64,000 nucleotides of DNA from Thalia democratica (lineage: Eukaryota): positions 248,001 to 312,000 of the forward strand of contig OZ241834.1 in the NCBI GenBank assembly GCA_965202585.1, written 5' to 3'. Positions 18,081 through 61,900 of the stretch are shown in pieces; position 1 is the first letter of the stretch, and every line of letters starts with the position of its first letter. A program made the position numbers and the translations under genes. A model generated the notes under the pieces. That model had not been told where the DNA came from and did not search any database. It saw only the letters and a list, made by a program, of their open reading frames with translations.

Positions 18081-18514
18081 TTAAACTTTTTTCATGTAAT
18101 GATATTTTTCATGCCTAATCAAGTTATTTTTTCTGTGAGTTTTATAATCACAATGACTGCAAGAAAATTTTGGTTCATAATGAAATACCATGTGTCGAGT
18201 TAAATGATCTTTTGTTTTGAAAAATCTACCTTTTGGACAAATAGAACATTTAAAAGATTTAACATCACTGTGAGTAGTTTGATGAACTTTTAGGTTACCT
18301 TTTACAGAAAATTTCTTATCACAAATTTGGCAAGCAAAAGGTTTTTCCCCTGTATGACTTCTATAATGGATTGTTAAATGATAATTACTGACAAATAACT
18401 TCCAGCATACATCACATTCGAATGCTCTCGATTTGTCATGAACTTTCATGTGTCGATTAAGAGTTTTATTGCTTGAGTATCTTCTATTGCAAATGTGACA
18501 ACTGAATGGCTTTT
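18081..18514 (-). CDS. Terminal exon of a C2H2 zinc-finger protein gene (five fingers)
   Basis: The ORF extends upstream of the listed ATG as [26 protein letters not shown]. An in-frame stop lies just upstream and an AG acceptor sits at 18515-18516. Fingers are CHIC, CDVC, CQIC, CSIC and CSHC, with a TGEKPF linker; stop at 18081. Upstream exons were not identified. Confidence 0.85.
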
Positions 18515-33286: not shown

Positions 33287-33983
33287 GTCAAATATGCACG
33301 AAGAGACATTTTTGCACGAGGGGTCACTTTTACAGCTTTATTTGACTTTTTTTTTTTTTGCAGCTTTATTTTATATATTTATTGTTAATTTTTTTTAATG
33401 ATTATAGCTTTAATTTATTTTCGCTTATGTTTTAATAATTTGAAATAAGTCTATAGTAGATTACAAATTCTTAAACATACTGTTAAAAAGTAAACTTCTA
33501 TTTTTTTTTTATACTTTTTTAACTCATATAAAATATTAAACTATTTGCTAAAATTATTGATAAATGAAAAACTTAAAAACATTTCAGATAGAAACTATAC
33601 CTTTTGATGTAGAGTTCAATATATATTTTATGTGTATATAATGTTAGGTATATGTGTGTATAAAAGTTATTTTAGTTTTTTGATACTTAAAAAAAATTAA
33701 TGTTGTAAAGTTTAATAGTTTTAATTTTTATAGAATTTTTTATTTTAAAGTTTAAACTTTGACTGCTAAGATTTTTTTTCTTTTTTTCATTTGTAGCTCA
33801 TTATAATTTCAATTAAATTGGGTATGCAACTCGATGACCGAGAGGTCTTTTTGCGTATCTAGGTCCTTAAACTAGAACAATTTGAGCAGTTTTTCGTCTT
33901 TGTTCAATTAACCATTAAACGTAGACACTTTTGCACGGGTAAAATTAATCTTATTTATTTTTATTTTCTTTTTTTTTTACCTT
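33287..33983. mobile_element. Left part of a TTGCAC-type foldback element interrupted by the ERV
   Basis: GTCAAATATGCACGAAGA (33287-33304) is the exact inverse of 47855-47872; GACACTTTTGCACGGGT near 33925 resembles the inner left arm of 21212-21680. Confidence 0.55.
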
Positions 33984-35272
33984 TGTAGGACACTTGTGCA
34001 AAATCTTATTTTGCCTTGTGTCCAAATTTTTATAATTTAAAGGAATTAATGTTTTTCACTTGATATTATATTTTTTCCTTAAAAAAGAAAACACTGAATA
34101 AATATAGTAAAACTGATTTCCGAAGAAAAAACTATTTTTCACAAACAAAATAAGTGCTAGTTAAAATGATTGTTGTCTTTGATTTCTTGATTAAACTGGA
34201 AATTGCTGTTCATGGGTGTGGCTAAGGGAAAATGAGAGAATAAAATGAGAGATCAAGTGATCTACAGTCCAAAGTCCAGGAAAATGAGAGAATAAAATGA
34301 GCGTGATTTATGGAAAATTCTAGAAAAAGAATTCAAAATCTATAAATACGCCCGATCAGAGCATGAAGCGGGCAATCCACCACGAAACAAGCACGAAGCG
34401 ACACTCTGCTCCGCAAAAGAAATAACATCGTCAATCTTCAAGCAAGGAGATTTCAACAATTACCTAATCGAAGAAGCCCACGCATTCTGTGGCATCGAGA
34501 ATTTAAGTACTGGAAGTACTCTTTCATCAAATACTCTAAGTTGGACTCCACGATTGAGTCGCAGCGTTCAATCAGATTAAAGTGTACATTCATCTCAGCA
34601 AGTAAACCCACACAGACTGGGCGCCAACCTTAGCTACACTTCTACAAACAAGTTGTTTTCATACTGTTTGATTCTATCGTAATGTTTATATATATTCATA
34701 TTATCATATATACTCACTATTGTATTTGCATTGTAATATTTATATTTATATCACCGCATTTATTCACTATTGTATTTGTATTGTAATATTTATACATATT
34801 TATATCATCGTGCCTATTTAGTATCGTATTTTATCGCCACGCTCTGCTTACGGAAAGGAAAGGAAAACAGACCACGCAACGTTTAGCAAGATTCTGCAAA
34901 CGAGACGGACCAACGTCGAGTGCCAGAAGCTGAGCGAACGGAGACCAGTGACACGCCAAAGGGGGAATCCGGAGCACGTTTCCTTCTATTTGTTAACATT
35001 AAGTGTCTAAACTTATTGTGAGCTGTCATTGCGTATTTGTACATAATAAACCAATATTATTTAGTTTCATTATATTTAGTTAAATAATTATATAATTATG
35101 TCCTTAAAACCCTTAAAAAAGGCATTAGTCCTGAAGGTACCCAGAACTCGGTCCAGAACCGAAATAAGTTGTTCCGAGACTACTGCTAACCTAGAATCCG
35201 ATGAGATTGTTGAGACTGAAACCGAGGCAATTTCGAAGGAAAACAGTGAGGCTCCTAGTCTGGGTAACAATA
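33984..35272 (+). repeat. 5' LTR of family A (1289 bp)
   Basis: Starts TGTAGG; identity with the 3' LTR ends at ...GGGTAACAATA; TATAAA at 34341 and AATAAA at 35045; internal tandem GAAAATGAGAGAATAAAATGAG and a ~55-bp duplication. Confidence 0.97.
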
Positions 35273-36648
35273 ATGGCGTCCTCCGAAGCGAACATCCGCC
35301 AACCACAGAAGACAACACTAAAAAAATTATCGAATTAACTAAATTAGTAGAAAATAGTAACAAAGTAATAGAAGATAAATTTAATACTATTTTAAAAACA
35401 ATTTTTATACAGAATTCTCAATCATCGAATATCCCTACAAATACCGAGGTAAGTACAATAAATAATCTTAACTCACATATAAATTTAACAGATCCTGAAA
35501 AAATACAACCAACAATGACAACAGAGGCGGTATCGACATTACCTACCAACAAAATCCAGACACCAATTCCATTATCAAGCCATGCGTCCAAATCTTGCAC
35601 AATACCAAGCAATTACAATTCAATTTTAAACGTTGACCAGTCAAACGAAAGAAATGGAAGTCAACCACAAGATAATAACCAGTCGATCGCACAGTTACAA
35701 AGGCAAATTGACAACCTCCAAAAGACAATAAACCAAAATCCTGTCCACGAACGTATAACAACCCAACCTAACACCAACCACATTTTTGGCAACCACGATC
35801 CGATACCCAGAAATCAACACTTCCAGCAAACAGTTAATTCGAGGCTATCAAATAGCATTTCTGATAAAGCATTCAGAAAAATTTCATGGGAAAGACCAAG
35901 AAAGGAGTTGAGCCTCTTCGAGGTTCAATGTAAAAGCCAAGGATTTTTTGATGATCAAACACAATTTGAAATTATTATCGGAATCTGGCCAATTAATGAC
36001 GTACTTTCTTACGTAAAAGCTGGCAAACCATCTAGTTATATCTGTTTTAAACAAGAAATCTTAAGTATGACCCCATGTTTGCCAGACATACTTAAACCTC
36101 CACCTATCTGGAGCAGCACTCCAACCTTTAAAGATATCCATCAACTAATATCAAAAGGTCTTACATGCTCTCAAGATGACCTTTACAAACATTTGGCACT
36201 GATTTATTGCCCGAAATGGGCTAGTAACATTCTAAAAAAAGACCTTGAATTACAAATTGATAAGTTCAAAGGTCGGGTTATGTGGACTCTTGAACAAGGC
36301 CCAATTGATTTGAAAACAAACTACAACAATAGAAAATCAAACAGCCAGTATAATTTTAATGACAAATTTCACAACGCATTCAACCAACAACAAAACCAAA
36401 ACTTTTCAAATTATAACCAGAACAGATACAATCAAGCACAAAACTATAGACCAAATCTAAACCAGTTTGATAATAAAAATAATAACAGGTGTAGTTATCA
36501 CGTTAGGTTCGGTGAAAAATCCAATAATTGTGAAGGCCAACAATGCGATATGTACCAACAATTTTTAGAAAAAAAATTAAGCTTTCTCAAAAATAAACCT
36601 GCAGCAGTTAACATGTCAATAATACAAGATATTTCGAATGCTGAATAA
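35098..36648 (+). CDS. gag: Gag-like protein (516 aa), initiating inside the 5' LTR
   Basis: Intact ORF with a coiled-coil (IAQLQRQIDNLQKTI), an N/Q-rich tract and RCSYHVRFGEKSNNCEGQQC, the CxYHxxFG..C knuckle of gypsy Gags. Confidence 0.88.
   Translation: MSLKPLKKALVLKVPRTRSRTEISCSETTANLESDEIVETETEAISKENSEAPSLGNNNGVLRSEHPPTTEDNTKKIIELTKLVENSNKVIEDKFNTILKTIFIQNSQSSNIPTNTEVSTINNLNSHINLTDPEKIQPTMTTEAVSTLPTNKIQTPIPLSSHASKSCTIPSNYNSILNVDQSNERNGSQPQDNNQSIAQLQRQIDNLQKTINQNPVHERITTQPNTNHIFGNHDPIPRNQHFQQTVNSRLSNSISDKAFRKISWERPRKELSLFEVQCKSQGFFDDQTQFEIIIGIWPINDVLSYVKAGKPSSYICFKQEILSMTPCLPDILKPPPIWSSTPTFKDIHQLISKGLTCSQDDLYKHLALIYCPKWASNILKKDLELQIDKFKGRVMWTLEQGPIDLKTNYNNRKSNSQYNFNDKFHNAFNQQQNQNFSNYNQNRYNQAQNYRPNLNQFDNKNNNRCSYHVRFGEKSNNCEGQQCDMYQQFLEKKLSFLKNKPAAVNMSIIQDISNAE
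35274..35288 (+). promoter_or_regulatory. Primer-binding site
   Basis: TGGCGTCC begins 1 nt after the LTR. TGG complements the tRNA CCA end; the first 8 nt fit a tRNA-Asn-type GGACGCCA 3' end (tRNA identity is inference). Confidence 0.6.
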
Positions 36649-39600
36649 AGTGAAAATTCCACTCAAGACAAACCAACAAACAGTAATAAAGTAGATGAAT
36701 GCATTACTAATGACAGAAATAATGAGGAAATTAAACAAGAAACAAACGAAATAGATGATAAATTCATTAAAAGGAAATTGCCTTATGAAACAAAACTAAA
36801 AAACAATACTGAACTATTAATAATTGCCGACAATGAAACCTCTGTACAATATCTTTTCGATACTGGTGCAGAAGTTTCGATTATACCCAAATCCATGGTT
36901 GACACATATGAAAAGGACAAGTCAGCGCCTAATATATGCGACATAAATGGCAAAACATCTAAAGCATTAGGTTATTCAATGAAGTACGTTAAAATTGGCC
37001 TGAAACCGGACCTGCCACATTCTTTCTACGTAAAAGACACAGATATTCCTTTTGCAATTCTAGGTTTAGATTTCATAATTAAACATACATTAACAATAAT
37101 ACCACAAGAAAAAACTATCGTACAAGGTGATTCAGGAGTTAAACTGAAATTAAAACAGCTAACTACTCCTGAAACAAAAACGAAAATAGAAGTAGAAAAT
37201 CTCCTAAATCTTTTTCCTGAAATCGACAAAGAACCAAACTACAAAGAAAAGCCCAAGCACAACCATGTCTTAGATATAAAACTTGAAAAAGAATTTTCAC
37301 CCCGACACCAAAGAGTAAGGAAAACTAACAAAACTATTTCAAAGGAAATAGAAGATAAATTTGATAAATTACTCAAACAAGGGGCGGTAATAAGAGGCAT
37401 TTCTGAAATAGTCTCACCTTTAACTGTAGTCAGAAAAAAGAACGGAAAGCCAAGGGTATGTGTGGATTACCAATATATTAACCAATACACTAAAATAATG
37501 AGCTACCCTTTACCAAATATTGACGATCTTTCTTCTATTATACCAGTCAACTCTAGAGTTTTTTCAACACTCGACCTGAGAGAAGCATACTTAATCTTCC
37601 CTTAACTTACCGAGCACAAAAAGTAGCAGCCATGATTTCTCAATATGGCACATTTTTGCCGTTAAGAACAACCTTCGGCCTTAAGAATGCCCCAATGGCA
37701 TTCCAAAGGCTTATGGATGACATAATGGCTCCATGCCATAATTTCAGCTTTACATACATAGATGACATTATAATTTATTCGAAATCAATGGAAGAACACA
37801 TGCAACATCTGTTTGAAGTATTGTTTCAACTTAACAAATTTGGATTGCATATCAATAGGGAAAAATGTAAATTCGCCGCTGAAGAAGTTCAATACCTTGG
37901 ACACATACTGAGTAGCAAAGGTTTCTATATGCAACAAAGTAAAGTTGAAGCTATCGCAAACTTCCAAACCCCACAAACCATCAAACATTTGCGGTCCTTT
38001 CTTGGCTGTCTAAACTACTACAACAAATTCGCTCCGAAACTGGCAGAAATACTTCAACCATTATATAAATTAACAACAGGAGAGCTAAAAAATTCTAGAA
38101 AAAAGTTAATCTGGGAAACTGAACACCAAGCAGCATTTGAAAAAGCTATACAAACTCTAGTTTCGGCCACTCATCTCTCTTATGAAGACCCAAAAAAAGA
38201 ACTAGTTCTTTCTACAGACGCATCCTCTACTCGTATTGGAGCCGTCCTAGAACAAAAGCATGAACCAGGAATTTATAAACCCTTGGCATTTTTTTCAAAA
38301 AAACTACCAGTCCTTAAATCAGTAAGATCCGTATTTTTCAGAGAACTCACAGGTCTTTATCTGAGTATTAAACATTTTAAGGTCAGAATCATAGGAAGAC
38401 AGCTTCGGGTAAGAACAGACCATAGAGCCTTGGTAGATGCTATTAACAATGCTACGGGAAATCATTCACCAAAAGAAGAAAAATATATTGCTATAATAAA
38501 AGAATATGCCCCCTTGATGGAATTTATTCCGGGCGATCAAAATACAACAGCTGACTTATTAAGCCGTCCGGTACTCGTTGCATACAACGATAAAAACTCA
38601 GAAGAAGAGGAAGAAAACAGTGGAGAAATTGATGTTAACGATAAAACAATAAATTCGAATTATGATTTAGACCAGGAAATCACACAAGCTGAATCAGAAT
38701 CTAATCAATTTATTCCCTTAAATATTCAGATAATTTCAGAAACGCAAAGCCAAGCCAATGTACATTTTTACCTTCATAGCAAACTCTCAAAAGCAACAAA
38801 ACCCGATCATTTTTGAGTCTAGATTGATAGATGATTGTGTAGTACAAGGTATCATTGAAACAAAAACCCATAGTTTTCGTATATGGGTTCCGCCCAAATT
38901 AAGATCTAATATCTTGAATCAAAATCATAACATCTTACACCAAAGAATTGATAAAACTTTAACAGCAGAAGGATCTAATTTCTGGTGGCCAAAAATGAAA
39001 AAATATATTGAACTCTTTGTAAAAACTTGTATAACATGCCAAAAAGTGAAGGTAAGGAAATATAATAGACCTAAATTAGGTTGTTACCCAAAATCACTTG
39101 GAAGATTTGACTATGTTCATGCAGACTTGGTAGGACCTTTGGTTGAATCTCAAAACATGAAATATATACTTACCATTAAAGAACGGTATACTGGTCTTTT
39201 TGCATCATGTCCCTTACCCAACAAAATGGCAGAGACCGTAAAGAACGCGTTTCTCCAAAATTGGATTGGTCATTATGGCATACCATGTACAATAGTTACA
39301 GATAATGGCAAAGAATTCTTTAACCATCATTTCGAAACTATGTGTTCGGATCTATCTATCAAACATAATCTCACCGCGCCATACCACCCTGAAACCAACG
39401 GAATGGTAGAAAGACAACATAGAGAGTTAAAAACGGCCTTAAGGACATTGAAGAATAAACTTAACTGGGTGCAACATCTTCCTATTATCACTCTAGCTCT
39501 AAACAATCAGAGCATTGGTCGTAAAGGATTTAGCCCTGCTCAATATACTTTTGGAACACCCTTAAATATTCCTGGAAAGTTATTCTTTCCGAACACAAAC

Positions 39601-40686
39601 ACATTCGAACCTCCTTCATTATTTGAAACAGAGATATTTATAAAAAATATGAAAGAATTTACTAGGGAGTGGAGAAACCCAGACGAAGCTATAACATATA
39701 TCGAAAGACATTTACATGAAGCAAAACAAGTTCTAGTAAAAAATCACACAAAACATTCACTAGATCATTTGTACAAAGGCCCTTTTAATGTAATAGAACG
39801 AGGTCCGCATTCTTTCATAATTGACCAAGGGTCAGAATTTAAAAAAATTGCTATTGGAAATTTGAAAGCATATTTTCCTAGATATCCAACTGCAAGTAGG
39901 GACAGATCTGAAAATACTAACTATAATTTGAGAGCGGGAAACAAACTCAAAATTAATACAAAATTCAGCATGATGAGCGAAAACAAACTAAAATATATTA
40001 AACGTCCATTAATCAGAGACAAATCTAATGGGCTACTATATTTAATTGATTCAGGCTCGGATGTTTCCATCATGCCTGCACATCTAACTAATTACATAAA
40101 TTGCGCCAAAACTGATGAAATAAAGAGTTTCTCTGGTCAAACTGAAAGAGCACTAGGAATAACTCATGCTAACATTAACATCGGTATTCCCAAACTGTAC
40201 TCCTACGAATTTTCAGTTTTTCCCAATGGACACAATTTTGCAATTCTGGGACTAGATTTCATAAATCAATGGAATATCGTTATTGCTATAGCTGCAAACG
40301 CAATTTTTCATGTCAATGGCAACGATTCGCCAATCAGAATAGAAATAGAAAGAAACCATATTGAAAAAATGCAAGAAAAACCAATAGATCTTAGGACAGA
40401 TCGCTCTAAAAATGATAGCAAAATAACAATACCTAGAATGAAAAAATCGATAAAGGAAACAGTTGAAGTTACAAGAATGGAAAAATATCAAAGTATGCAC
40501 GAAGGTCTTAAAAACCTCTTGACAAAGAAAGTTCGAAAGAAATTTAACCCAAGAGACCAAAAATATAATAACAACGATTTAATACATAATCAGAAAAACA
40601 TGTTGCAAAACTCTTTGGAACTATATCCAAATCATAACTCAACTAGAACAGGACCGCTTCACCAATATTTTACAGCGAAATATTAA
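36649..40686 (+). pseudogene. pol: pol: protease 1 - RT - RNase H - integrase - protease 2 (two frameshifts)
   Basis: Motifs: LFDTGAEVSII (DTG 36859-36867); RVCVDY, FSTLDL, FGLKNAP, YIDDII; TDASS..GAVLEQ, TDH, ADLLSR; HHCC, HADLVGP, TDNGKEF, NGMVER, GPF; LIDSGSDVSIM (DSG 40048-40056). A 1-nt deletion lies near 37590 and a frameshift near 38760-38800. Confidence 0.95.
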
Positions 40687-42694
40687 GCAAATCATGGTTG
40701 GATTTCACAACAAACGTAAAAAAAGTTTTTTAAAAAAAAAACTATAATAAATAGCTAGTATCAACGTTTTAAAATTCAAATATATTCTTTTAATTAGCTT
40801 TTATTTAATTGATAGTAATTAATTATTAACCAATTAATTCGTTTTTTTTTTGTTTTTGTTTTTTTTAACTCAATTGAAAGACATGATAAAACAAAGGCTT
40901 AATATAACAATACGGTTTGGAAACTAATAAATAAAGGAATCCAAAACATCACACTTAACAGTCATAACGATCATTTACACTTTGCTTCGTACAATTAAAA
41001 TTATATTGATAAATTAACTAATAGCATTTTTTTTTAACAATTAAAAACTTTATGTATAAAACTATGTTTAAAAAAAAAATATATAAACATAAAACTAAAA
41101 TAATTTAAATAAAAAGTATTAAAAATAAAAAATGATGAACAACAAAAAAGAAACAAAAAAAAAATATCTAAATATAAATACATTAGTATATATAAAATAT
41201 ATCTGAATTTTTAAACTAACACCAAAATTTATGTACAAACACGCTTTTACTTTTTCTCATTGCATATTGGTACTACTCCATCTAATGCGAATGACTAAAT
41301 GCAGTAAACTTAGTGTGTACATACTAAATGTAAAGAAAAATCGTTTTTCTATTTTTCTCTATTTAGCTTCACTTCTGTTATTTTTATCTTCCCCGTGCAC
41401 CTGTAATTAATTTTAAATTGACATTTCTGTGTTATTTTAGATAAATTTAGTAGCTAAACGAGGGAATCATGTTTACAACACACCTGCAAAACAAACTTAA
41501 CTATTAGAGTTAAATTCTTTCGAATGAACTCGCTTTAAGTTTTATTAAACGTTTCCCAATTTGAATCGCTACACGTGCTTCGTTACATTGATGCACGTGT
41601 CAATCAAATCAGAAGGGCTTAAAGACTCTCTTTAACGCTTTGTTACTATCGTTAATTCTACATTAAAACTTAATAGCACTTGTGAACAAATTGGTAAACG
41701 TTTCTTATCTTTTTTTCTTTCGAGTTATAACTTTCATTCACTGAAACAAGATTTATTTCAGATTTGTATTCATTTAGAACAGCTTTCATTAGAATATGTA
41801 ACTCAATCTTAAAATTGTAAGTTTAGATTATGTGTTTTTGCTTCTTAGTTTGTTAAATTTTTTTTAAAAAGAAACAAAAGTTTATTTTTGTAAAAATAAT
41901 TCTGTGTTTATTTTTTTTTCGAAATTGAATTAATAATTGTGTTAATCATAATCAAATTAGTTGCCAGATGTATGTTATTTTAATTTTCGTTATTAGAAGT
42001 ATGCATTATTACCTTTTGTCTTCGTTTTTTCTTTTCACTTTGTTTATCAAACACAGATTATAATTGACATTAAATATTTCCACTGACTATTTGAATTTTA
42101 ATTTACTCTACAACTTTTTTTCTTTCCGCTTTCCACCAATCAATTGTCCCATCTTCATAAAAAAAAACAATACTGAAAACATGAATTATATATATTTATA
42201 CACCCTAAAAAAGAAACTTAATAGTAATAATTGTGGAATTAAGTAAATAAAAACAAAAAATTATCAAATTAATAATACATAATTAAATATCAAAAATAAA
42301 GATATCTATAAATATACAATAATAAATATAAAACCTTGTAGTAAATACTTTGAACAATAACCAAACAAAATACGCGTAATATCAGACGATATCTCAAAAT
42401 CACTACCAAGTTAATCAAACCAAATTAAATTAACCATAAGTAAAATAATTTGTTTATGTAATTCTTGACCAATACATTTCAGAACAACATTCAAAATGCA
42501 TGTGTAATCTATCCGCTTAATTCATTTTAGCAATCTTCAGTCATCATCACTATTAAATAAACAATAAAAAGAAGTAATATTCGGCGTTATGCCGTACATT
42601 TTGTTGATTATACATGTAAATATACAAATACACTATACACATAATTGCCTTGCCACATATCGCCTAAAAACATTATTAACAAAGCTAATAACAA

Positions 42695-42709
42695 ACTAAT
42701 ATTTTCCAG
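42695..42709 (+). promoter_or_regulatory. Candidate 3' splice acceptor for a subgenomic env mRNA
   Basis: CTAAT branch-like motif plus ATTTTCCAG ending at 42709, 18 nt upstream of the env ATG at 42728. Confidence 0.5.
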
Positions 42710-42727
42710 ATTTAGCTTTTAAGAATT

Positions 42728-44548
42728 ATGAAGTTATTCTTTCTCAATATAAGTCTGTTTGCCTGTCTTTTCTTTCTTGGAGACAACATTTTTTGTCAAT
42801 CTAACAAAACAATCTTAGACTTAAGATCTCAAAACGTAGACATATGCTTCGATAAGCACATTGTAAAAACTTACTTTATAACTCCTTCAATCGGAGGATG
42901 CGCTGAACCGGACACAACTTACCAAATAATTAAAGATATTAATATATACCCGCCTGCAGATACGACAATACACATAAACGCAATAGCGTGCAGAGAGGTC
43001 GTGTCCACGTATGAAAACATAATGTGGTGGACTTTCACAAAAACTTCTACATTAATAAATAAAAGGTCTTTTTCAGTCGCAAGCGATCGCTGTGTAAGGT
43101 GGGTCAAGCAAAGAACTGACCCAATTCTTGGGGATCTATTTAAACATTCAATAACTCCTCATACTTATGTTACACTGAACAAAAAACAAAATATTTTTTA
43201 TTATCTTTAAGGAGTGACTGAGAATGTTAGAAACGCACAAACTTTGGAAACAACTTTAATGTTTAATAGACAAACCCTAACAGGTAGCCATTTTACCACT
43301 TCAGACTTAGAATGTAATGTTTTAAAGGGGGTATGTATTTCCAAGACTGACACATTCTTATTTACTCCTTTTGAAAATAAATGTAAAACTTGGAAACCAT
43401 ATAAAGGGTTATCTTTACTTAAATACAACCTGAAAAATGGAAACCTTTACCAGGTTCCTGAACTAGACCTTGCGTTTCATAGGTTAATACCTTGCCCTGA
43501 ATATGTACACAAATGCATTAGAGAAGTCGATGAAAATAAACAAATAAGGTGTACACCCACAAATTTTGCTCTTAGTTTTTCAAATATTTCAACGCTAGTA
43601 GATGATAACTTAAAAATAAAACTAAACCAATATAATAATATAAGTGCACGAGACAATATATTAAGTCAAGCTATTCAATCTTTGGCCGTTAAAACAAATT
43701 CAGCCATAGAAAAGCTCGCCCAAGAGTTCTCAAGTGTGCTGTGCAAATTGGGTGAAATCTCAATAACCAACTTGCGCAACACCCAATATCGCAAACCCAG
43801 TGAGACTTTGAGTCTCATGCTGGGCAGGAAAGTTAAGGCAACCATGATAGGTGAGTTACTTGCACAAATCTCGTGCACCAAAGTAAACGCAACCTTAGTA
43901 CCAACTCTACGTATCGGCGATGAAATGTCTCCAAGGCCTCTATTTAGGATTCGTTTCGCAAACGAGTCAAAAATCGCACAATACACTTCGGAGGGCTATT
44001 TAAGATGGGGTATCAAAGGCTTAACCTCTCATTTAACTGAACAAGTAAACATATTTGTAATAGAGGGAATCGCCATAGCGTTTAAAAATGGGTCTCTCTT
44101 AAATGAACTGCCTGAGATAAATAAATTAGGGCTTCCTACTTCTGTTATTCCTGATTCTATAGACTATGATGAAGGAATACTTTTAAATGAATTATCGACT
44201 GCGTCAGATCCAAATAATTTGGGTTCAATGAACCACATGCTGCAAAGCATACTGGGAATCACTTCTGAGCATCTTATAGCTAATGGGGTAAACAAGGAGC
44301 TGTTAAATAAATATTTGACTGTCCCTATGAATAAAAATGAACATCTGTCCTTTATTAAAGAAATTAAACAATTCTTCCGCCCCAAAATTTCTAACATAAT
44401 AAAAAAAATCGCTCTATTCGGATCTTTAACAATCACCTTTCTAACTACGCTCTTAATAACGTATATCTTTTGTGGATTTACACTTAAAGCTATTATTAAG
44501 AGTACCAGAACAAAAACAAAAAATAATAAAAATGAAAACCAGAGTTAA
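42728..44548 (+). pseudogene. env: Envelope glycoprotein (~606 codons, one in-frame TAA at 43208-43210), class III fusogen-like
   Basis: ORFs 42728-43210 and 43214-44548 are in the same frame. N-terminal signal peptide, ~12 ectodomain cysteines, NxS/T sites (NKT, NIS, NAT, NES, NGS), C-terminal TM segment (IALFGSLTITFLTTLLITYIFCGFTL) and a basic tail. Confidence 0.85.
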
Positions 44549-44958
44549 TGACATTATAATTTGTAGCTCATACTTAATTTTTTTCTCTTCTTCTCCTTCT
44601 TCAAATTCTTTTGATTAATGTAAAAGCTCGCTACTTTTATTCTATTTTCTTGTCTTTATTTGGTATATCAATAAAAAAAGAAAAAATTATACAAAACAAT
44701 CTTTCTATTCTAAACCCTATCTTTGCCATCCTTGACCTGAAGGACCTCTTTCTCATTTTTCTGCATAAGTCTAGATAAAAAGAAAAAGATAGCCAAAAAT
44801 TCTTTTGTTTTCTTTTTACAATAAAACAAGTTTAGTACCAATCCTTACTACATTTATGAATCGTTGATAATTTATTTTTGCTTTCTTTTTGTTACTGTAA
44901 CTATAAAAAAAACATTTGAATTGTCAACAGTCATTAAAAAATTTAAAAAAAAAAAAAG

Positions 44959-45306
44959 ATGAATCTTTTACAAGTAGAAGACCTTGACTTTCTGTTGGAC
45001 GAAGAATTACCTGAATTAGATCATGAAATGTTCGAAAACTTCTTTCGTCCAATTCAACAAGAAGAAGAGTTTGAAAAGGCTAGCGACCTAGGTTATGAAA
45101 GTGACGACGAAAACAAATACATCGAAGAGAGAGAAGCTCCACTGATAGCTCCACCAGTGCCAATCATTGAACAGAACTGGCATCGTTTGCGGGATGACAA
45201 AAGGATGTTGGATCCCGAGCTTCTAACAATCCTCATCGACATCATGTTAGAGGCCGAAATACTGGGAGATAACGTTTTTGAAGAAGTGTATGAGGGCGAC
45301 TTTTAA
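44959..45306 (+). CDS. Small highly acidic accessory ORF of the ERV (115 aa), function unknown
   Basis: Intact ATG-to-TAA ORF, GC-richer than its A/T-run flanks, roughly one-third D/E; lies between env and the 3' LTR. Confidence 0.6.
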   Translation: MNLLQVEDLDFLLDEELPELDHEMFENFFRPIQQEEEFEKASDLGYESDDENKYIEEREAPLIAPPVPIIEQNWHRLRDDKRMLDPELLTILIDIMLEAEILGDNVFEEVYEGDF

Positions 45307-46374
45307 AGGAAAGGTATGTGAACATTAATGCTAAATAAAAGATTTTTTTTTTAAATTATAATAGTCATAAAAAAAATTAACATTTTTTTTTTGTTGTTTC
45401 TTCCCAAGTATTTTTGTTTCGTTTTGATAAAAAAAAAAAGAAAATAAAAAAATAAAAAATAAATAATAAATAAATAAAAAAAATTAAATAAAAATCAATT
45501 AAAAAAAAAATTATATAATAAAAATTTATAAACAAAAATATATATAAAAAAAAAAAAACAACTTGTTAACAACTTATTTGTCTATATATGTGTGTTTATT
45601 TTTTATTATTATTGTTTGTTTTCTGATTTTTTTTGTGTGTACCTTTGACCTTATAAACTACAATAACTCCAGGTAATTAAATAATAATAACATTGATTTG
45701 CTTCTATCTATTCACTTTTAACCTTAAGCAATCTAGAATTCAAATCTATTATCAACACGTTTATTTGAGTTGTTACCTTTACACATTTTATTGCCGAGAT
45801 CTATCTGAGTAATTCTTTTGAAATACAAAATTTTAATATGACAACGTTGTATACTTATCGAATTAATTTTTTTTTTGAATGTTTGAATAAGTACATCATT
45901 TGAATTAGTTATAAGTTAAACTCAATTTTCTTCTCTCCTTCAATGTTTAAAATTTTTCATTGTAAACCTGTTTTGTTTCTACAGTAAATCTTAGATTTTC
46001 TAACAATACATTTTTCCATTACCTATTAATATTTATTAACTAAAGAAAATAGAAAAATAAAAAACATTGTTAAAATTGTTATTTGTACTTTAAATTTATT
46101 TGCATTTATCATCTCAACCCTCCGACAACTTGCTAATGTATCATTTTTTTTAGAAAGATTAAAGTTATTAATTTGAACATTTTTTTTTCTTTCAAGCATG
46201 ATAAACCCGCTCTAATTCCTTATTATTCTTTTCTTTCAAAAGTTATTTTACACTTAGACATTTTAAGTTAATTTTCGTCCCTTTAATAATAGTTTTTTCT
46301 CATAAGTTTTTTATACAAGTTAATAAAATTTTTTTTAGTAAAAGAAAAAAAAAAAAGAAAAACATAAGTCGATA

Positions 46375-47667
46375 TGTAGGACACTTGTGCAAAATCTTAT
46401 TTTGCCTTGTGTCCAAATTTTTATAATTTAAAGGAATTAATGTTTTTCACTTGATATTATATTTTTTCCTTAAAAAAGAAAACATTGAATAAATATAGTA
46501 AAACTGATTTCCGAAGAAAAAACTATTTTTCACAAACAAAATAAGTGCTAGTTAAAAAGATTGTTGTCTTTGATTTCTTGATTAAACTGGAAATTGCTGT
46601 TCATGGGTGTGGCTAAGGGAAAATGAGAGAATAAAATGAGAGATCAAGTGATCTACAGTCCAAAGTCCAGGAAAATGAGAGAATAAAATGAGCGTGATTT
46701 ATGGAAAATTCTAGAAAAAGAATTCAAAATCTATAAATACGCCCGATCAGAGCATGAAGCGGGCAATCCACCACGAAACAAGCACGAAGCGACACTCTGC
46801 TCCGCAAAAGAAATAACATCGTCAATCTTCAAGCAAGGAGATTTCAACAACCACCTAATCGAAGAAGCCCACGCATTCTGTGGCATCGAGAATTTAAGTA
46901 CTGGAAGTACTCTTTCATCAAATACTCTAAGTTGGACTCCACGATTGAGTCGCAGCGTTCAATCAGATTAAAGTGTACATTCATCTCAGCAAGTAAACCC
47001 ACACAGACTGGGCGCCAACCTTAGCTACACTTCTACGAACAAGTTGTTTTCATACTGTTTGATTCTATCGTAATGTTTATATATATTCATATTATCATAT
47101 ATACTCACTATTGTATTTTCATTGTAATATTTATATATATTTATATCACCGCATTTATTCACTATTGTATTTGTATTGTAATATTTATACATATTTATAT
47201 CATCGTGCCTATTTAGTATCGTATTTTATCGCCACGCTCTGCTTACGGAAAGGAAAGGAAAACAGACCACGCAACGTTTAGCAAGATTCTGCAAACGAGA
47301 CGGACCAACGTCGAGTGCCAGAAGCTGAGCGAACGGAGACCAGTGACACGCCAAAGGGGGAATCCGGAGCACGTTTCCTTCTATTTGTTAACATTAAGTG
47401 TCTAAACTTATTGTGAGCTGTCATTGCGTATTTGTACATAATAAACCAACATTATTTAGTTTCATTATATTTAGTTAAATAATTATATAATTATGTCCTT
47501 AAAACCCTTAAAAAAGGCATTAGTCCTGAAGGTACCCAGAACTCGGTCCAGAACCGAAATAAGTTGTTCCGAGACTTATGCTAACCTGGAATCCGATGAG
47601 ATTGTTGAGACTGAAACCGAGGAAATTTCGAAGGAAAACAGTGAGGCTCCTAGTCTGGGTAACAATA
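46375..47667 (+). repeat. 3' LTR of family A (1293 bp)
   Basis: Near-identical to 33984-35272 (about 11 substitutions and one 4-bp indel by eye); A/G-rich tract at 46340-46362 upstream; followed by TSD CCTT. Confidence 0.97.
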
Positions 47668-47874
47668 CCTTGACTGTTACCCTTAACCCTTTCCATGTAG
47701 TAACGTTTTTCAATATTGTTTTTTATTTTTTAACATTTACTTTCACCCCTAACCCTTACCCTTGGTTAGTTACTTTTATATTATTCTGTCTTGTTTTTAA
47801 TTTTTATTTTTATCTTTTTACTCTTGTGCAAAAATTACTCTTCGTGCAAAAGTGTCTTCGTGCATATTTGACCC
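47668..47874. mobile_element. Right part of the TTGCAC-type foldback element interrupted by the ERV
   Basis: CTGTTACCCTTAACCC and CCCCTAACCCTTACCCTTGG as in 21212-21680; ends CGTGCATATTTGACCC. Confidence 0.7.
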
Positions 47875-50109: not shown

Positions 50110-53100
50110 TAAACAAGCGATAAACGTTTAATCAGTTTAAAAAAGATACAAAGTATTACTTAATCAGTTTCATTCAAAATACTTATATTTCTTGAGATAA
50201 ATTAACGTTTGAACTCATATCTCCTTAATGCAATTTTTTGGTCGATCAAAAGATACAATTGTTAAACTGAAACTCTTAGAAACATTTTTAAATTCTTCCT
50301 AACTCTTTGCGACCAAACACAGGTTAGCGGCTAAAGTAACTACTTCTTAGAAATTAAAACTTACAATCTGTTTTAATGTAGTTTTAATGAAAAAATTTAA
50401 AGTTGAAGATACTTACAATTTTTTGAGTTGGCTTTACATTTGTACTCATATCTCCTGAATGCGACTTTTCACGGTCGATCCAAAAATATCATTAGAAAGG
50501 TAAAACTCTTAGAAACATTTTAAGATAGTTCTTAGTTCTTTTTCACTATACAGGGTTAAACGGCAAGAGTAAACATTTCTTACAAATTAAAACTTACAAA
50601 TTGTTTTAACGAAGTTTTAAGATCATACTTAATAGTACAAAGTACTTACAATTTTCTTAAGATAACTTTAACTGTGTACTCATATATCCTAAATGCAACT
50701 TTTCTCGGTCGATTCAAAGATACCTTTAGAAAGCTAAAACTCTTTAGAGCATTTTAAGATATTTTCAGCTCTATGCGATCAAACACGGGTAAACGGAAGG
50801 AGTAAAAATTTCTCACCAATTAAAACTTACAAACTCTTTTAATGAAGTAAGAATTAAAACTTACAAATTTCATGAGATGACCTTAAATTTGTACTTAATA
50901 TCTCCTGAATGCAACTCATCTTTATCGATCGAAAGATACCATGAGAAAGCTGAAACTCTCAGAATAATTTTAAGATATTACATCGCTTTTTTAAATTAAA
51001 CATGGGTAAACCGCAAGAGTAGCTATTTCTTACAAACTATTATAACAAAGTTTTAAAAATCATACTTAAATTTCAAATTCCTTAAGATGGCATTACGTTT
51101 GTACTCATATTTCCGAAATGCAAATTTTCTCGATAAATTAAAAGATACCATTGAAAGCTGATTTTCTTAAAATAATTTTTAAGGTAGTACAAAGTTCTCT
51201 GCGACCAAATAGGGTTAAACGGCAGGAGTAAAAATTTCTTACAAATTAAAACTTACAAATTGTTTTAACGATGTTTTAAGATCATATTTAAAAGTACAAA
51301 GTACTTACAATTTTCTTAATATGACTTTAACTGTGTACTCAAGTATCTTGAATGCAATTTTTCTCGGTCGATCCGAAAGTACCATGAGAAAGGTGAAACT
51401 CTAAGGAACATTTTAAGAAGTTTATTAGCTATGTGCGACCAAACACGGGTAAAGGGCGAGAGTAAAAATTTATTACAATTTGTAAGTTAGAAAATCTTTT
51501 AATGAAGTTTATAAAATCAAACTTTATAGTTTTAAGTACTTACAACTTTCTTGAGATGACTCTACCTTTTTACTCATATATTCTGAATGCGACTTTTCTT
51601 GGTCGATCGAAAGATACCATGAGAAAGCTGAAACTCTCAGAATAGTTTTAAAAGATTATATCGTTTTTCTAGATAAAAAACAGGTAAACCGCGGTAGTAA
51701 TAAATCTTACAAATTAAACCTTACAAACTGTTTTAATAAAGTTTTTAGAATCATACTTAAAGTTCAAAGTAATTACGAAATCCTTAAGATAACATTACGT
51801 TTGTTCTTATATTTCCGAAATGCAAATTTTCTCGATAAATCATAAGATACCAATAAGGTTGAAAATCTTAGAAAAATTTCAAGAAGTTTCATAGCTTTGT
51901 GCGACAAAACACCAGTAAACAGCGGGAGCAAACATTTCTTACCAATTGAAAGTTACAGACTGTTTTAATTAGGTTTTGAAAATCAAATTTAACAGTTCAA
52001 AGTACTTACGGTTTTATTGAGGTAACTCTCGTTTGTACTCATATCTCCTAAATTCGACTTTCTGGGTCGATCCAAAAATATCATTAGAAAGATAAAACTC
52101 TTAGGAACATTTTAAGATATTTTCAGCTCTATGCGATCGAACACGGTTAAACGGCGGGAGTATAAAGTTTTTACCAACTGAAAGTTACAGACTGGGGTAT
52201 AAATTTCTTACAAATTAAAACTTACAAACTGTTTTAACGAAGTTTTAAGATCATATTTAAAAGTACAAAGTACTTACAATTTTTTTAAGATGACTTTAAC
52301 TGTTTACTCAAGTATCGTGAGTGCAGTTTTTCTCGGTCGATCCAAAGATACTGTGAGAAAGCTGAAACACGTATGACCATTTAAGATATTTTCAGCTCTA
52401 TGCAACCAAACACGGGTAAACGGCGAGAGTAAAAATGTCTTACCTATAGAAAGTTACAAATTGGTTTAATGAAGTTTTGAAAAGCAAACTTAACAGTTCA
52501 AAGTACTTACGATATACTAGAGATGACTTTATGCTTGTACTCAGATCTCCTAAATGCAACTTTTCTCGGCCGATCCAAAGATACCATTAAAAAGCTAAAA
52601 CTCTTAGAAACATTTTAAGATATTTTCAGCTTTATGCGATCAACCACGGGTAAACGGCGGGAGTAAAAATTTCTTACCAATCGAAAGTTACAAATTGTTT
52701 TAATGAAGTTTTAAAAAACAAACTCTTTAGTTAAAAATATTTACAATTTTCTTCAGATGACTTCACGTTTATACTCATATCTTCTAAATATAATTTTTCT
52801 TGGTCGATCCAAAGATACCATGAGAAAGCTGAAACTCTCAGAATAGTTTTAAAAGATTACATTGATTTTTAAGACTAAACACGGGTAAACCGCGGGAGTA
52901 ACTACTTCTTACAATCTAAAGCTTACAAAATGTTTTAATAAAGTTTTAAAAATAGTACTTTAAGTTCAAAGTACTTACGATTTTATTGAGGTAACTCTCG
53001 TTTGTACTCATATCTCCTAAATTTGACTTTTCTAGGTCGATCCATGAATATCATTAGAAAGATAAATCTCTCAGAAACATTTTAAGATATTTCTTATCTC

Positions 53101-56100
53101 TGTACAACCAAACACGGGTAAACCGCAGGAGTAACTACTTCTTAAAAATTAAACCTTACAAACTGTTTTAATAAAGTTTTGAAAATCAAAATTACCAGTT
53201 CATAGTACTAACAATTTTCTTAAGTTAACTCTCGTTTGTACTCATATATCTTGAACGCAACTTTTCTCGGTCGATCTAAAGATAGCATAACAAGGCTGAA
53301 ACTCTTACAAAAGTTTTAAGAAGTTTTATAGCTCTGTGTGACTAAACACGGATAAACGGCGGGAGCAAAAAAAAAATTTTCATTAGTTTGAAGCTTACAA
53401 ACTGTAAAAACTAAGTTTTGAAAATCATATTAACAGTTCAAAGTACTTACAACTTTCTTGAATTAACTTTTTTTATACTCATTTCATCTTAATTCGACTT
53501 TTCTCGGTCAATACAAAGATACCGTGAGATAGCTGAAACTCTCAGGAACATTTTAAGAAGTTTCTTAGCTCTGTGTGACCAAACACGGGTACACGGCTGG
53601 AAATTTTTTTTTACCAATTGAAAGTTATTAATTGTTTAATGAAGTTTTGAAAATCAAACTTTACAGTTCAAAGTACTTACGATTTTCTTGAGATGACTTT
53701 ATGTTTGTACTGATATTACGTAAACGCGACTTTTTTCAGTTGATCAAAAGATATCATTAGAAAGCTGAAACTCTTAAGAACTAAATTATTTCTAAGCTCT
53801 GTGCAAACAAACACGGGTAAACGGCTCGAGTAAAATTTTCTTATCAAATAACAATTGGTTTTAATGAAGTTTGGAAAAACAAATTTAACAGTTCAAAGTA
53901 CTCACAACTTTCTTAAGATGACTTTACGTTTGTAATCATTTCTCCTAAATGCGATTTTTCTTGGTCGATTTAAAGATACCATTAAAAAGCTGAAAATCTT
54001 ATAAAATTTTTAACATATTTTATAGCTCTGTGCAACAAAACACAAGTAAACACCGGAGTGAAAATTTTTCTTAAGTTAAAACTTACGAACTGGCTTAGTG
54101 ATATTTTTAAAATAAAATTAACAGATTAAAGTACTTACAACTTTCTTAAGATGACTTTACGTTTGTATTGATATCACGTAAATGCGACTTTTTTCAGTTG
54201 ATCAAAAGATATCATTAGAAAGCTGAAACTCTTTAAAAATTTAAGCTATTTCTTAGCTCAGTGCAACCAAACACGAGTAATCGGCTGGTAAATATTTCAA
54301 AAATTTGAAACTGTTTTAGTGAAATTTTGAAATCCGAACTTAAAAGTTCAAGGTATTCACAACTTTCTTAAGATGACTTTACGTTTGTACTCAGATCTCC
54401 TTAATGCAATTTTTCTCGGTCGACCATAAAATACCATTTAAAAGCTTAAACTTATTTTAAATATTTCCTAGCTTTGTGCAACTAAACACGGGTAAACGGC
54501 AAGAGTAAATATTTTTTACCAGTTGAAACTCACAATCTATTTTATTGATATTTACAAATACAAACTTAACAGTTCAAAGTACGTACAACTTTATTGAAAT
54601 AACTTTATGTTTCTACTGATATCACGAAAATGCGACTTTTCTCAGTTGATCAAAAGATATCATTAATAGCTGAAACTCTAAGGAGAATTTAAAGAGATTT
54701 CTTAGCTTTGTGCGACCAAAACACGGGTAGACGGTGGGAGTATAAATTTCATTTCGATCGAAACTTACAAACTGTTTTAGTGAGGTTTTGACAACTAAAT
54801 TAACAGTTCAAAATGCATTCAATTTTTTTGACATTTCTTTACGTTTGTAATGATATCTCCCCCTGAAGACTATTCTCGGTCGATCCAAAGATACCATTAG
54901 TAAGATAAAACTTTTAGGAACATTTTATTAAATTTCTTAGCTCTGTGCAACCACACAAGGCGAACGACAGGTGAAATTTTTTTTTTTAATTGAAACTTAA
55001 AAATTGTTTTAATGAAGTATTGAAAATCAATTTAACAGTTCAAACTACTTTCATTTTTTTTTGAGATTACTTTCGTTTGTACTCATATCACCTGTAAGCG
55101 ACTATTATCGGTATAACTAAAAATACCACTAAAAAGATAAAACTCTTATGAACATTCTATCATATTTCATAGCTCTTTGCAAGTTAACACGGATAATCGC
55201 AAGTTGTGAAATTAAACAGAAGTGAAAATCAAAAAAATTAAACTTTTAAACTGTTTAAATGAAGTTTTGAAAACCGATATAAAAAGTTCAAAGTACCTAC
55301 CGTTTTTTAAATAAGTCTTTACATTTTTACACATATCCTGTAGAGACGTTTGTCGGTCGATCAAAAGATACGACTAATAAGCTGAAAGTCCATTAAATTT
55401 TTTTATCTTCGTGCGACAAAACACGGGCAAACGGCGGAGCAGAAATTTCATACCGATTAAAACTTAGAAACTGTTTTAATAAAGTTTTGACAATATGTAA
55501 TTAATATCTAGTAATGTACCGGACTCACTATCCGGGTCCGTATCCGGCCGGATATTGCCATCTTTGTCTGATATCCGGATCCGGCCGGATCTTGATATGA
55601 AAAAAAAGTCCGGATCCGGTTCCGGCCGGATCCTAACAGAGATTCGGCTGATTCGGATCTAGTTAGTAAAAAAAGAGCATACAGAAAAGTATTTTTTCAA
55701 AAACAAACCCTTTGTAAATTAAAAAGAGTCATTTTCGTCAGTTAAAATTAAACAACTACCGTGATTTGCTCATTTTGAACTCGTGACTAATTTACATTTA
55801 TTTTCATTTAAACTATGAAATAAACATTTTAGAAATGCAACTCTTTACTTATGTTATAAAATAAAAAACTTTACTACCAAATTGTTAAGCTAGTTTAAAG
55901 ATTTTTTAAAAAACTCAGGCTAGTTTTCTTTTGTGATTTTCTAGTTAATTTTATTTAAGAACTTGATTTTAATTGGTTTTAGATTGGTAAGGCTATAGGG
56001 GGTCCTCCTTGATTTTTACAAGTTGATCTTATTTAATAAATTTTAATCTTAGCTACCAGATATTGTTTCTGTGACGAACTTTATCTTTCTATCAATTTTC

Positions 56101-57347
56101 TTTTAGTAATTTAAAGTTGTTCTTAGTTATTTTAACTTTTATAGAAATTAAATTTTGTAACTACAAATGTAAGATCTACTTTTTATGTGAAAACTAGTGA
56201 TGTAACGGACTCACTATCGGAGTCCGGATCCGGCCGGATATTGCCATTTTTGTCTAATATCCGGATCCGGCCGGATTTTGATATGTAAAAAAAGTCCGGA
56301 TCCGGGTCCGGCCGGACTCGAAATTGTGAGTCCGGAACAACACTATTAATATCTAAAATTCAATTATCTTGAAATTACTTTTGTTTGCTCATATCACGTG
56401 AGCTTAACTATTCTCAGTTGATCCAAAGATATCAATTGAAAGCTGAATAAGAAACATTTAAGGTTATTTCTAAGGTATGTGCAACCAAACACGGGTAATC
56501 GGCGGGAGTAAAAATTTTGTACTAATTGAAGATTATAAACTATTATTATGAAGTTTATAAAATCGAATTAACAGTTCAAAGTACTAACAATATCCTTGAG
56601 ATACATTTACGTTTTTACTCATATCTCCTGAAGGCGAGTTTCTCGGTCAATGAAATTATACTGTTAGAAAGCTGAAACCTTTAGAAACATTTGGAGATAT
56701 TTCTTAGCTATGAGCGACCAACCATGGGTAAACAGCGGGAGTAAAAATTTCGTACCAATTGAAACTTATAAACTATTTTAATGAAGTTTATAAAAACAAA
56801 TTAACAGTTCAAAGTACTTACAATTTTCTTGAGATGCATTTACATTTTTACTCATATCTCCTAAATGTGAATTTTTCGGTCAATGAAAATATACTGTTAG
56901 AAAGCTGAAACGTTTAGAAACATTTTGAGATATTTCTTAGCTATGAGCGACTAAATACGGGTAAACGGCGGGAGTAAAAATTTCGTACTAATTGAAACTT
57001 TTAATATATTTATCGAAGTTTATAAAATCAAATTAAGAGTTTAAAGTACTTACAAATTTCTTGAGATGCATTTACGTTTTTACTCAGATCTCATGAATGC
57101 GAATTTATCAGTCAATGAAATTATACTGTTAGAAAGCTGAAACCTTTAAAAACATTTTGAGATATTTCTTAGCTATGAGCGACTAAACACGGGTAAACGG
57201 CGGGAGTAAAAATTTTGTACCAATTGATTATTTTAAACTAATTTAATGAAGTTTATAAAATCTAATTAACATTTCAAATTGCTTACAATTTTCTTGAGAT
57301 GCATTTACGTTTTTCTAATATCTCCTGAATGCGAATTTCGAAGTCAA
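50110..57347. repeat. ~232-bp tandem satellite, left block (~28 monomers)
   Basis: The anchor AAACACGGGTAAACGGCGGGAGTAAAAA and GGTCGATC/AAAGCTGAAAC motifs recur every ~230-235 bp; monomers are more diverged toward the left edge; interrupted by a hAT element at 55509-56345. Confidence 0.95.
55509..56345. mobile_element. 837-bp hAT-type non-autonomous element inserted in the satellite
   Basis: TIRs TAGTAATGTACCGGACTCAC / GTGAGTCCGGAACAACACTA; perfect 8-bp TSD TTAATATC (55501-55508 and 56346-56353); dense TCCGGATCCGGCCGGA subterminal motifs. Confidence 0.9.
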
Positions 57348-57369
57348 CTCTATATATTATGTTATAGAG

Positions 57370-58421
57370 ATTCACCTGAGTGTATGCTTGTTCATCAATA
57401 GAAGCTTTTAATTGAATAGTTGGATGTTTCAGTGACACTGATGCTTTCCATCCATTCAAACAATCAAAGACGTAATGATCAAGTTTTACTACACTATCAT
57501 TAACATCAACTGCCTCATCAAAATTTTGTGTATATGATCTACCAACTTGAAGTGCATTCGTCTCATCTGCACATTTGTTGACACCATGATAATCTTTTTA
57601 CCTGGATTTAATCCAGCATTGCTTACAGGTAGAACACTCAATATACCTGTTATTTTTCCTGCTCCAAATAAATGTTGTAGATGTTTTACTACATATATTA
57701 CAAGTTATTTTACCACTTGGTTGTTTTGTAATTTTCCTAAAGGATTTGTACGAGGAAACTGAGGCCGTAACAGCAGGTTGTGTCATTGCATCACGTGCTT
57801 CATTAAAATTTGGTCTTTTGCTTCAATAAAACCAATTGTCTCAATGACATCTTTCTCGTCTAAACTACCCCATCCTAACACCTCTTTGCGTATATCCTCA
57901 TCAGCTAAACCGGTTACCATGACATCTTTAAGGATAATTTTTGTGAAATGTACTAGCTTTTCCCTTTAAACGGGCAGCGAATGATCTGTGTTTTCAATCA
58001 AATCCTGTCTTGTACTAAGAAAGTCTGATCGTCGTACAACAACTTAAACAGGAATAACTGCAAGCTGCTTGATCATCCTTAAAAGCTCTTGCTCACTTAA
58101 ATTTACTAAATCATTATGTCCCTTCAAAATAGCATCGCCTAGATCTTCCTCACAGCACTGGTACAGTTGACGATGCTTTTCTACTTCTGTCATTTCAATA
58201 CTGTCTTTAAAAATAGTCCACTTTTGCAAAAATATGTTCCAACCCTCTTCATTGCAGTCTCTCCCTATTCGAGAACGGTCTATTTTTGGAGGCTTTGGTT
58301 TTGAAGAATTTGCGTTAATGTGAACGTTGTTGTGAATGATAAGTAAAGAAGCAGCTACAGAAGCATCAACGTCTGGTGTTTCATATGTGCAACACTCAAG
58401 AGGGCATTTAATCACATGCAT
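57370..58421 (-). pseudogene. Inverted gag of gypsy family B
   Basis: MHVIKCPLECCTYETPDVDAS... homologous to 11456-12340; frameshifted; continues to WKASVSLKHPTIQLKASIDEQAY, which reads like the pre-protease segment. Confidence 0.88.
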
Positions 58422-61500: not shown

Positions 61501-61900
61501 TGGCTTACAATAACCCGCAGATCTTAAACATTTGGCGTAACGTATGGAGCAAAAAGGAAGCAGCTCTTAGGTCTCGTTATGTTAAGTCTCTCAGGAATTT
61601 AAGTGAGCACACAAGATTGTTGCCACCATAGAATTGCGGTGATCATGTCATGATACAGAATCAAACAGGTAACTAACAAGTGGGGGAAAAGTGGTGTAAT
61701 AGTAGAGCTAAAAGACTATCATCAGTATGTTGTCAAGATTGATGGATCAGGTCGCTTAACTGTACGAAATCGAAAGTTTTTAAGAAAATTTAATCCTCCT
61801 GTTTGCAAATCTCAAAATAGTATCCCTTATCTTAGAAAAGCAAACATACCAACGCAGAAGTTGGTTTTTTCTGGTAACTATGAGAGAAAAGATTCCAAGG
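58555..61900 (+). pseudogene. pol: pol of gypsy family B (PR-RT-RH-IN), multiple stops and frameshifts
   Basis: VVTDTGAQS; ASGDAYTRRYD and TKCVDD; LAGSRFL..ESRYAAVEGE, TDHKPL, DAMSR; CDYFQF, SSDGGPEF, SNGRAELAVK. Confidence 0.92.

Follow-up and report, generated by a model that had tools for sequence, protein, structure and literature searches.

We analyzed a 64,000-nucleotide stretch of the genome of Thalia democratica (GenBank assembly GCA_965202585.1, contig OZ241834.1, positions 248,001 to 312,000 of the forward strand; hereafter the window, numbered from its first letter) containing a long terminal repeat (LTR) element whose pol frame holds two retropepsin-type protease (PR) domains. One of these, PR1, stands at the usual place ahead of reverse transcriptase (RT); the other, PR2, follows integrase (IN). 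PR2 is a genuine second retropepsin monomer domain (peptidase family A2, clan AA), complete in appearance, and the element carrying it is a Ty3/gypsy-type endogenous retrovirus-like element with an envelope gene (env) of the herpesvirus glycoprotein B (gB) type. As judged from the sequence, we put forward, with about even confidence, the view that PR2 was a real and probably competent second protease monomer in the pol frame of the progenitor, kept there as coding sequence.

A second retropepsin domain in frame behind integrase

The part of the pol frame concerned contains the following segments:

38887-39390, plus strand: integrase H2C2 zinc-binding domain and catalytic core (Pfam Integrase_H2C2, 4.5e-17; rve, 5.5e-12)
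39970-40359, plus strand: PR2, second retropepsin domain, delimited with the PR-domain profile (DSGS at 40048-40059; FAILGLDFI at 40237-40263)
40360-40686, plus strand: Lys/Asn-rich tail (108 residues) and stop codon, without detectable homologue

The integrase frame is open through 40683 and closes with the stop codon at 40684-40686. A short linker runs from the GPF motif of IN (39778-39786) to a Met-Met pair (39970-39975), at which PR2 opens. The active-site motif DSGS of PR2 lies within YLIDSGSDVSIMP (40039-40077); the PR alignment shows D at 97% and G at 91% there. PR2 matched the family at 12/12 columns conserved to at least 90% in an alignment of 34 protease domains, and it agreed as well at the I, G, D and F columns (86-97% conserved) of the ILGLDF segment, within 40237-40263. 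Aligned directly with PR1, it showed 35% identity over 86 residues (pairwise E = 3e-13). A preliminary description, made from the sequence alone, had proposed that a further, complete retropepsin domain was fused to IN in the same frame, downstream of it; the frame, the D-S-G motif, the profile and the AlphaFold2 fold all bore this out, and every peptide that it quoted was present, including FAILGLDFI in both PR1 and PR2. It had placed the region at 39990 to 40686. The open frame does extend to 40686, but the start is one base out of frame, codons beginning at 39991.

The AlphaFold2 monomer model of PR2 (predicted local distance difference test score, pLDDT, 87.8; predicted template modelling score, pTM, 0.80) has the full strand-helix-strand order of a retropepsin. 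Foldseek matched this model at probability 1.00 to the RVP domains of DDI1 and to the proteases of xenotropic murine leukaemia virus-related virus (XMRV), feline immunodeficiency virus (FIV) and human immunodeficiency virus (HIV), those of FIV and HIV with slightly weaker E-values; template modelling (TM) scores of the matches were 0.5-0.68. All 31 PDB matches with E <=0.001 were of the retropepsin type (DDI1, foamy virus, XMRV). A profile of PR2 and its relatives likewise matched the solved structures of ASPRV1, DDI1 and the protease of equine infectious anaemia virus (EIAV). The family profile built here scored PR2 at 190.8 bits, a value to be read with the fact that the profile was made in part from PR2 itself. 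DDI1 and ASPRV1 (SASPase), the best structural and profile matches, share with PR2 the fold and the layout of a D-[ST]-G motif plus helix; they are, in contrast, host genes and contain additional domains (in DDI1, UBL and UBA). At only 13-18% identity to them, PR2 is a protease of the retroelement kind and not an orthologue of either.

The base composition and the distribution of stop codons were compared along the element:

IN region: 34.0% GC; stops, 0 in the reading frame, 35 and 38 in the other two
PR2 region: 34.1% GC; stops, 0 in the reading frame, 15 and 10 in the other two
Tail region: 30.7% GC; stops, 0 in the reading frame, 6 and 13 in the other two
Spacer region behind the tail: 23.6% GC; stops, 39 in frame, 53 and 72 in the other two

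PR2 and the tail together thus make up 231 codons without a stop, and an accidental open frame of that length in DNA this AT-rich is very unlikely. The open frame, the pol-like GC content and the retained family-conserved residues lend indirect support to the idea that PR2 has been maintained under selection. The tail was predicted to form a disordered linker followed by two low-confidence helices. It did not prove to be a decayed PR-RT linker or RT, shuffle tests giving z = 0.7, -0.6, -0.6, 0.2 and 0.3. A likeness of the tail to one protein (P0027) reached z = 2.45 (28/1000 shuffles) in a hand-picked comparison and was not accepted as evidence.

The element and its envelope gene

PR2 is enclosed by a single LTR element of 13,684 bp (33984-47667), flanked on both sides by a target-site duplication. 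The gene order is gag, pol (PR1-RT-RNase H-IN-PR2-tail) and env, followed by an acidic open reading frame (ORF) and the 3' LTR. Its remaining features are:

33980-33983, no strand: target-site duplication, left copy, CCTT, possibly 5 bp (ACCTT); read directly
33984-35272, plus strand: 5' LTR, 1289 bp, from blastn of both element ends; contains the first 58 gag codons
35098-36648, plus strand: gag ORF, 516 aa; without Pfam match
36778-40686, plus strand: pol, PR1-RT-RNase H-IN-PR2-tail (Pfam RVP, gag-asp_proteas, RVT_1, RT_RNaseH_2, RT_RNaseH, Integrase_H2C2, rve)
36778-37161, plus strand: PR1, canonical protease (DTGA at 36859-36870; FAILGLDFI at 37051-37077)
40687-42727, plus strand: AT-rich non-coding spacer, 23.6% GC, with stops in all frames; about 2 kb between pol and env
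42728-44548, plus strand: env, herpesvirus-gB-like, with signal peptide and C-terminal membrane anchor (Pfam Glycoprotein_B, 26.8 bits, below gathering)
44959-45306, plus strand: acidic ORF, 115 aa, in the AT-rich stretch after env (1.8 kb); without Pfam match
46375-47667, plus strand: 3' LTR, 1293 bp, from blastn of element ends; purine-rich tract just upstream
47668-47671, no strand: target-site duplication, right copy, CCTT, the same four bases as the left copy

The two LTRs with their target-site duplication are hallmarks of Ty3/gypsy LTR elements, and pol adds the order PR-RT-RNase H-IN, the H2C2 zinc domain and a GPY/F-type IN C-terminus (GPF). All relatives of this pol were Ty3/gypsy-type pols. 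The IN was 40-44% identical to that of one gag-pol family from marine metagenomes (the P0001 family), and PR1 was 50% and 44% identical to two relatives (P0049 and P0026), with which it clustered in 83/100 neighbour-joining (NJ) bootstraps. gag and pol share one reading frame with a single stop between them, which may be the natural gag terminator. Comparison of the element ends by blastn showed 11 mismatches and 1 gap in 1293 columns (98.84% identity).

Several details of the LTRs were noted. The gag start lies within the LTR, so that the 3' copy repeats the opening 58 codons of gag (35098-35272 and 47493-47667). The usual start of a primer-binding site is TGG, and this triplet occurs one base after the 5' LTR (35274), hence within the gag reading frame. 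Both LTRs contain a tandem repeat with a unit of 50-54 bp in 2.6 copies (34675-34811 and 47066-47206), and the sole length difference between them falls in this area.

The env ORF follows pol and encodes a gB-like ectodomain together with a signal peptide and a membrane anchor, as is characteristic of errantivirus-like elements with a gB-type env; the signal-like N-terminus and the hydrophobic C-terminal anchor were read from the ORF translation. Public assemblies, metagenomic and Logan, yielded sibling env genes (P0208-P0230; 28 member sequences), all of them intact, the longest of their contigs measuring 10.3 kb. Two carry precomputed PF00606 assignments: one of 607 aa, 98% identical to the window env (P0208, 7 members), and one of 604 aa, 80% identical (P0209, 21 members). 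A T-rich tract and CAG stand directly before the env ATG and resemble a splice acceptor. Two long AT-rich non-coding stretches, 40687-42727 and 44549-46374 (24.7% GC), flank the gene.

The preliminary description had allowed that PR2 might turn out to be a fragment of a separately nested element with boundaries of its own. No such boundaries and no second-element genes were found around PR2. Internal direct repeats of at least 60 bp were absent from 30-46 kb, and tblastn with the proteins of the element itself and of two relatives detected no RT, RNase H or IN remnants downstream of PR2. A pol profile hidden Markov model (HMM), built from 40-odd related pols and run on six-frame translations, gave only negative scores past PR2, the control region scoring 235-503 bits, and the tail was unlike a PR-RT linker or RT. 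No PR2-like sequence was detected elsewhere in the window by tblastn. Since there are neither internal LTRs nor RT or IN remnants around PR2, it is not part of a separately nested element. The IN-PR2 join instead sits where the pols of relatives end, and in frame.

Origin of PR2 and the explanations weighed

The relationship of PR2 to other proteases was examined in a set of 164-166 PR domains, with an NJ tree and 100 bootstraps. Searched exhaustively, a set of 1.84 billion representative proteins contained no PR more than about 35% identical to PR2. The preliminary description had explained it as an old intra-element duplication, which the comparison did not uphold, PR1 not being nearest to PR2. 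Outside FAILGLDFI the two domains were 20% identical, which placed PR1 at rank 83/165; by distance from PR2 it ranked 20/166; and it was the immediate sister of PR2 in 4/100 NJ bootstraps. All distances were near saturation and are therefore compatible with an ancient duplication; third codon positions between the two domains were saturated (30/85 identical).

At the sequence level, FAILGLDFI is the only specific link between PR1 and PR2. Its coding sequences agree at 24/27 bases, and the three differences are all synonymous. Among 164 other PR domains the best match to this 9-mer was 8/9 and the usual one 4 or 5. The product of column shares in these domains put the chance of a common 9-mer at 2.4e-4, and 16/10,350 equally diverged PR pairs had an identical one. 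The common 9-mer is thus unlikely to have arisen by chance (about 2e-4 to 2e-3). Shared ancestry combined with strong constraint could account for it, as could an old patch of conversion or co-adaptation. That the segment is identical in two otherwise well diverged domains was correctly seen in the preliminary description; as proof of duplication it does not suffice.

Two sets of apparent relatives were set aside. The nearest NJ neighbour of PR2 (P0042, 61/100 bootstraps) is an isolated, degenerate ORF, and no IN precedes it on its 1.4-kb contig. The top matches by E-value (P0019, Belonocnema kinseyi XP_033210205.1, and P0020; E about 1e-21) were not close relatives, their scores being sums over 6-9 weak repeats of at most 18 bits each. 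These two proteins consist of 6-9 tandem retropepsin-like domains without D-[TS]-G, each followed by a Cys-containing segment, and have no other Pfam domain. They resemble a protease-fold repeat that was domesticated in gall wasps and is non-catalytic.

In the explanation that we favour, PR2 would be an old acquisition of a Ty3/gypsy-type PR domain, from PR1 itself or from another element, and would already have been in frame behind IN when the window copy integrated. It would have been maintained as coding sequence along with a new basic tail. Signs that it is old and not debris are the identity of at most 35% to known PRs, the synonymous sites saturated against PR1, the loss of donor flanks and the open tail. 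gag and pol are in the same frame and separated by one stop, so that read-through of this stop would give a Gag-PR1-RT-RH-IN-PR2-tail polyprotein, that is, a Gag-Pol with two PR monomers. Retropepsins are active only as dimers, in which each monomer supplies one D-[TS]-G. Each polyprotein would contribute two protease monomers; the partner of PR2 could be PR1 or another PR2, and a dimer containing PR2 may take part in polyprotein cleavage. The preliminary description had suggested, besides a heterodimer with PR1, that PR2 might be a protease for Env or for host targets.

A number of observations weigh against this explanation. PR2 is known from one copy alone, and this copy is defective: two frameshifts interrupt pol, to which relatives align in three frames, and one in-frame stop interrupts env. 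Since the LTRs differ by about 1.2%, the 231-codon open frame reflects the progenitor and says little on selection since integration. The Pfam check proposed in the preliminary description gave a divided answer: PR1 exceeded the gathering thresholds (gag-asp_proteas, 28.3 bits against 28.2; RVP, 25.5 against 20.7), whereas PR2 fell below both (22-24.2 bits and 15.6 bits, respectively). A PR after IN was found in 0/134 IN-bearing relatives, and in none of 13 loci from 9 related elements in any frame, the sole PR of which stands before RT. Nor was a sibling IN, pol or PR2 found in the protein collections, though sibling env genes are present there. Either env assembles alone between its AT-rich spacers, or there are many env-bearing copies without this pol and PR2; if sibling copies lack PR2, it would be a one-off recombination product in a dead copy.

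The searches for further copies and for other IN-PR arrangements returned the following. No further copy of the element occurs in the window, looking up three of its ORFs by exact match yielded no sibling copies, and metagenome and viral contigs scanned with PR2, RT-RH and env gave nothing. Among candidate IN-PR proteins, two (P0022 and P0082) were gene models running through several elements, a third (P0021) was likewise multi-element, and two with rve and gag-asp_proteas (P0013 and P0014) had the actual order gag-PR-IN.

A possible though doubtful alternative is that PR2 is a functionless passenger, pasted behind IN by template switching or recombination from a divergent Ty3/gypsy element in a recent ancestor or the immediate progenitor, and intact only because its donor was functional and little time has elapsed. 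The absence of the IN-PR order from the 134 relatives and 9 related elements fits this, as do the failure to find a sibling PR2 where sibling env genes are common, the position of PR1 as other than the closest relative of PR2, and the youth of the LTRs, which makes intactness uninformative. A recent capture should, however, have brought donor gag or RT sequence, and none was detectable on either side of PR2. The junction lies exactly at the end point of relatives' pols and in frame, the homologue-less 108-residue tail is also open in AT-rich DNA, a 9-mer in common with PR1 is unlikely for an unrelated donor, and no PR2-like sequence occurs elsewhere in the window. At the other extreme, PR2 would be a conserved, active second protease of a living gB-env lineage, pairing with PR1 within one Gag-Pol chain and hence sharing with it the identical FAILGLDFI segment. 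We consider this unlikely. If true, protease activation would no longer need two polyproteins to meet, and the two-lobe arrangement, formed from distant parts of one chain, would echo the duplication that gave rise to pepsins.

PR2 and the tail could also be a separate accessory gene, an ORF3 expressed on its own from the Met-Met pair at 39970, the pol stop having been lost in this lineage or copy. In relatives, pol ends within about 10-20 residues of this point, at which the profile-defined PR2 domain also begins, and extra ORFs captured behind pol are known in LTR elements (PMC5408684). Yet the one copy seen has no stop between IN and PR2, the stretch before Met-Met is A-rich, unlike the T-rich tract and CAG before env, and no relative has such an ORF after pol in any frame; we consider this explanation quite unlikely. 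Highly improbable, finally, is a fold kept for dimerization or regulation without catalysis, for example to hold Pol C-termini together or to restrain PR1. Retropepsin-like domains without D-[TS]-G do exist, as arrays in the two gall wasp-type proteins and as the isolated ORF described above, but PR2 retains DSGS and every family-conserved residue, which would be unexpected if catalysis were dispensable down to an identity of at most 35%.

Known systems and other features of the window

Env-carrying Ty3/gypsy (errantivirus-like) elements with an env of the herpes simplex virus (HSV) gB type have been surveyed across metazoans; their pol is given as PRO-RT-RNase H-IN, and no second protease is mentioned (PMC13524379). 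The window element resembles them in its LTRs with short target duplication, its gag, its PR-RT-RNase H-IN order and its gB-like env with signal peptide and anchor. It differs in the second PR and tail after IN, and further in its AT-rich gap of about 2 kb between pol and env, its long LTR (1.29 kb) and its gag start inside the LTR.

The nearest pol relatives found, those of the marine P0001 family (40-50% identity), share PR-RT-RH-IN, the IN C-terminal region and a PR orthologous to PR1. Unlike the window element, they have no env on the contigs examined, their pol ends shortly after IN, and no PR follows IN in any frame. One related locus on a TARA metagenome scaffold of 15,678 bp (L009) contains two complete copies of a related gag-pol element, tandemly arranged with a period near 8 kb; both copies have the same small ORFs ahead of gag and behind pol.

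Two retropepsin domains within one polyprotein, mostly with D-[ST]-G in both, also occur in tandem PR-PR proteins (P0044, P0037, P0060, P0023, P0045 and P0069). Three of these (P0044, P0037 and P0060) are 'gag pol polyprotein' entries of Hymenolepis (H. microstoma, H. diminuta), and metagenomic pols show the PR-PR arrangement as well. In these proteins the domains are adjacent and upstream of RT, whereas PR1 and PR2 of the window element are about 1,000 residues apart, across RT, RNase H and IN. In one of them (P0045) the first PR is degenerate (DSS), and RT-RH-IN follow the second. No description of tandem PR-PR retroelement polyproteins appeared in the literature searched, and full-text searches returned none of a PR after integrase.

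The Juno and Vesta LTR retrotransposons of bdelloid rotifers carry extra ORFs after pol, encoding a GDSL esterase, a DEDDy exonuclease and env-like proteins (PMC5408684). They are alike in having an enzymatic module added after IN; theirs derive from cells or viruses and stand as ORFs of their own, whereas the module of the window element is its own kind of protease, fused in frame. PR2 would add a protease to the modules attached after integrase in LTR elements (chromodomains, env, esterases, exonucleases).

The need for two Gag-Pol chains to meet times particle maturation. A polyprotein with two protease monomers would change this dimer-timing logic and would offer a natural case for the study of PR pairing and divergence.

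Elsewhere in the window, no tRNA genes or Rfam families were found. Satellite repeats with a unit of about 233 bp, their copies 60-87% identical, form an array at 50200-57450 and 62490-64000, which is interrupted by a retroelement remnant at 58.7-61.8 kb. Remnants of a different LTR retroelement lie at 58677-61809, where pieces of RT, RNase H and IN occur within 59.4-61.6 kb, and at 11456-13342; the IN-bearing segment 12528-13342 is 76-88% identical to 60990-61809. An RT fragment (Pfam RVT_1, 7.2e-10) followed by Cys/His-containing ORFs was seen at 4751-5863 and 7883-8625, part of the unit being repeated (5589-5863 and 8351-8625, 71% identity); it probably belongs to a non-LTR or Penelope-like element. 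A single host-gene-like coding signal was seen in the window, a C2H2 zinc-finger ORF of 122 aa on the minus strand at 18081-18449 (Pfam zf-C2H2, 3.9e-17).

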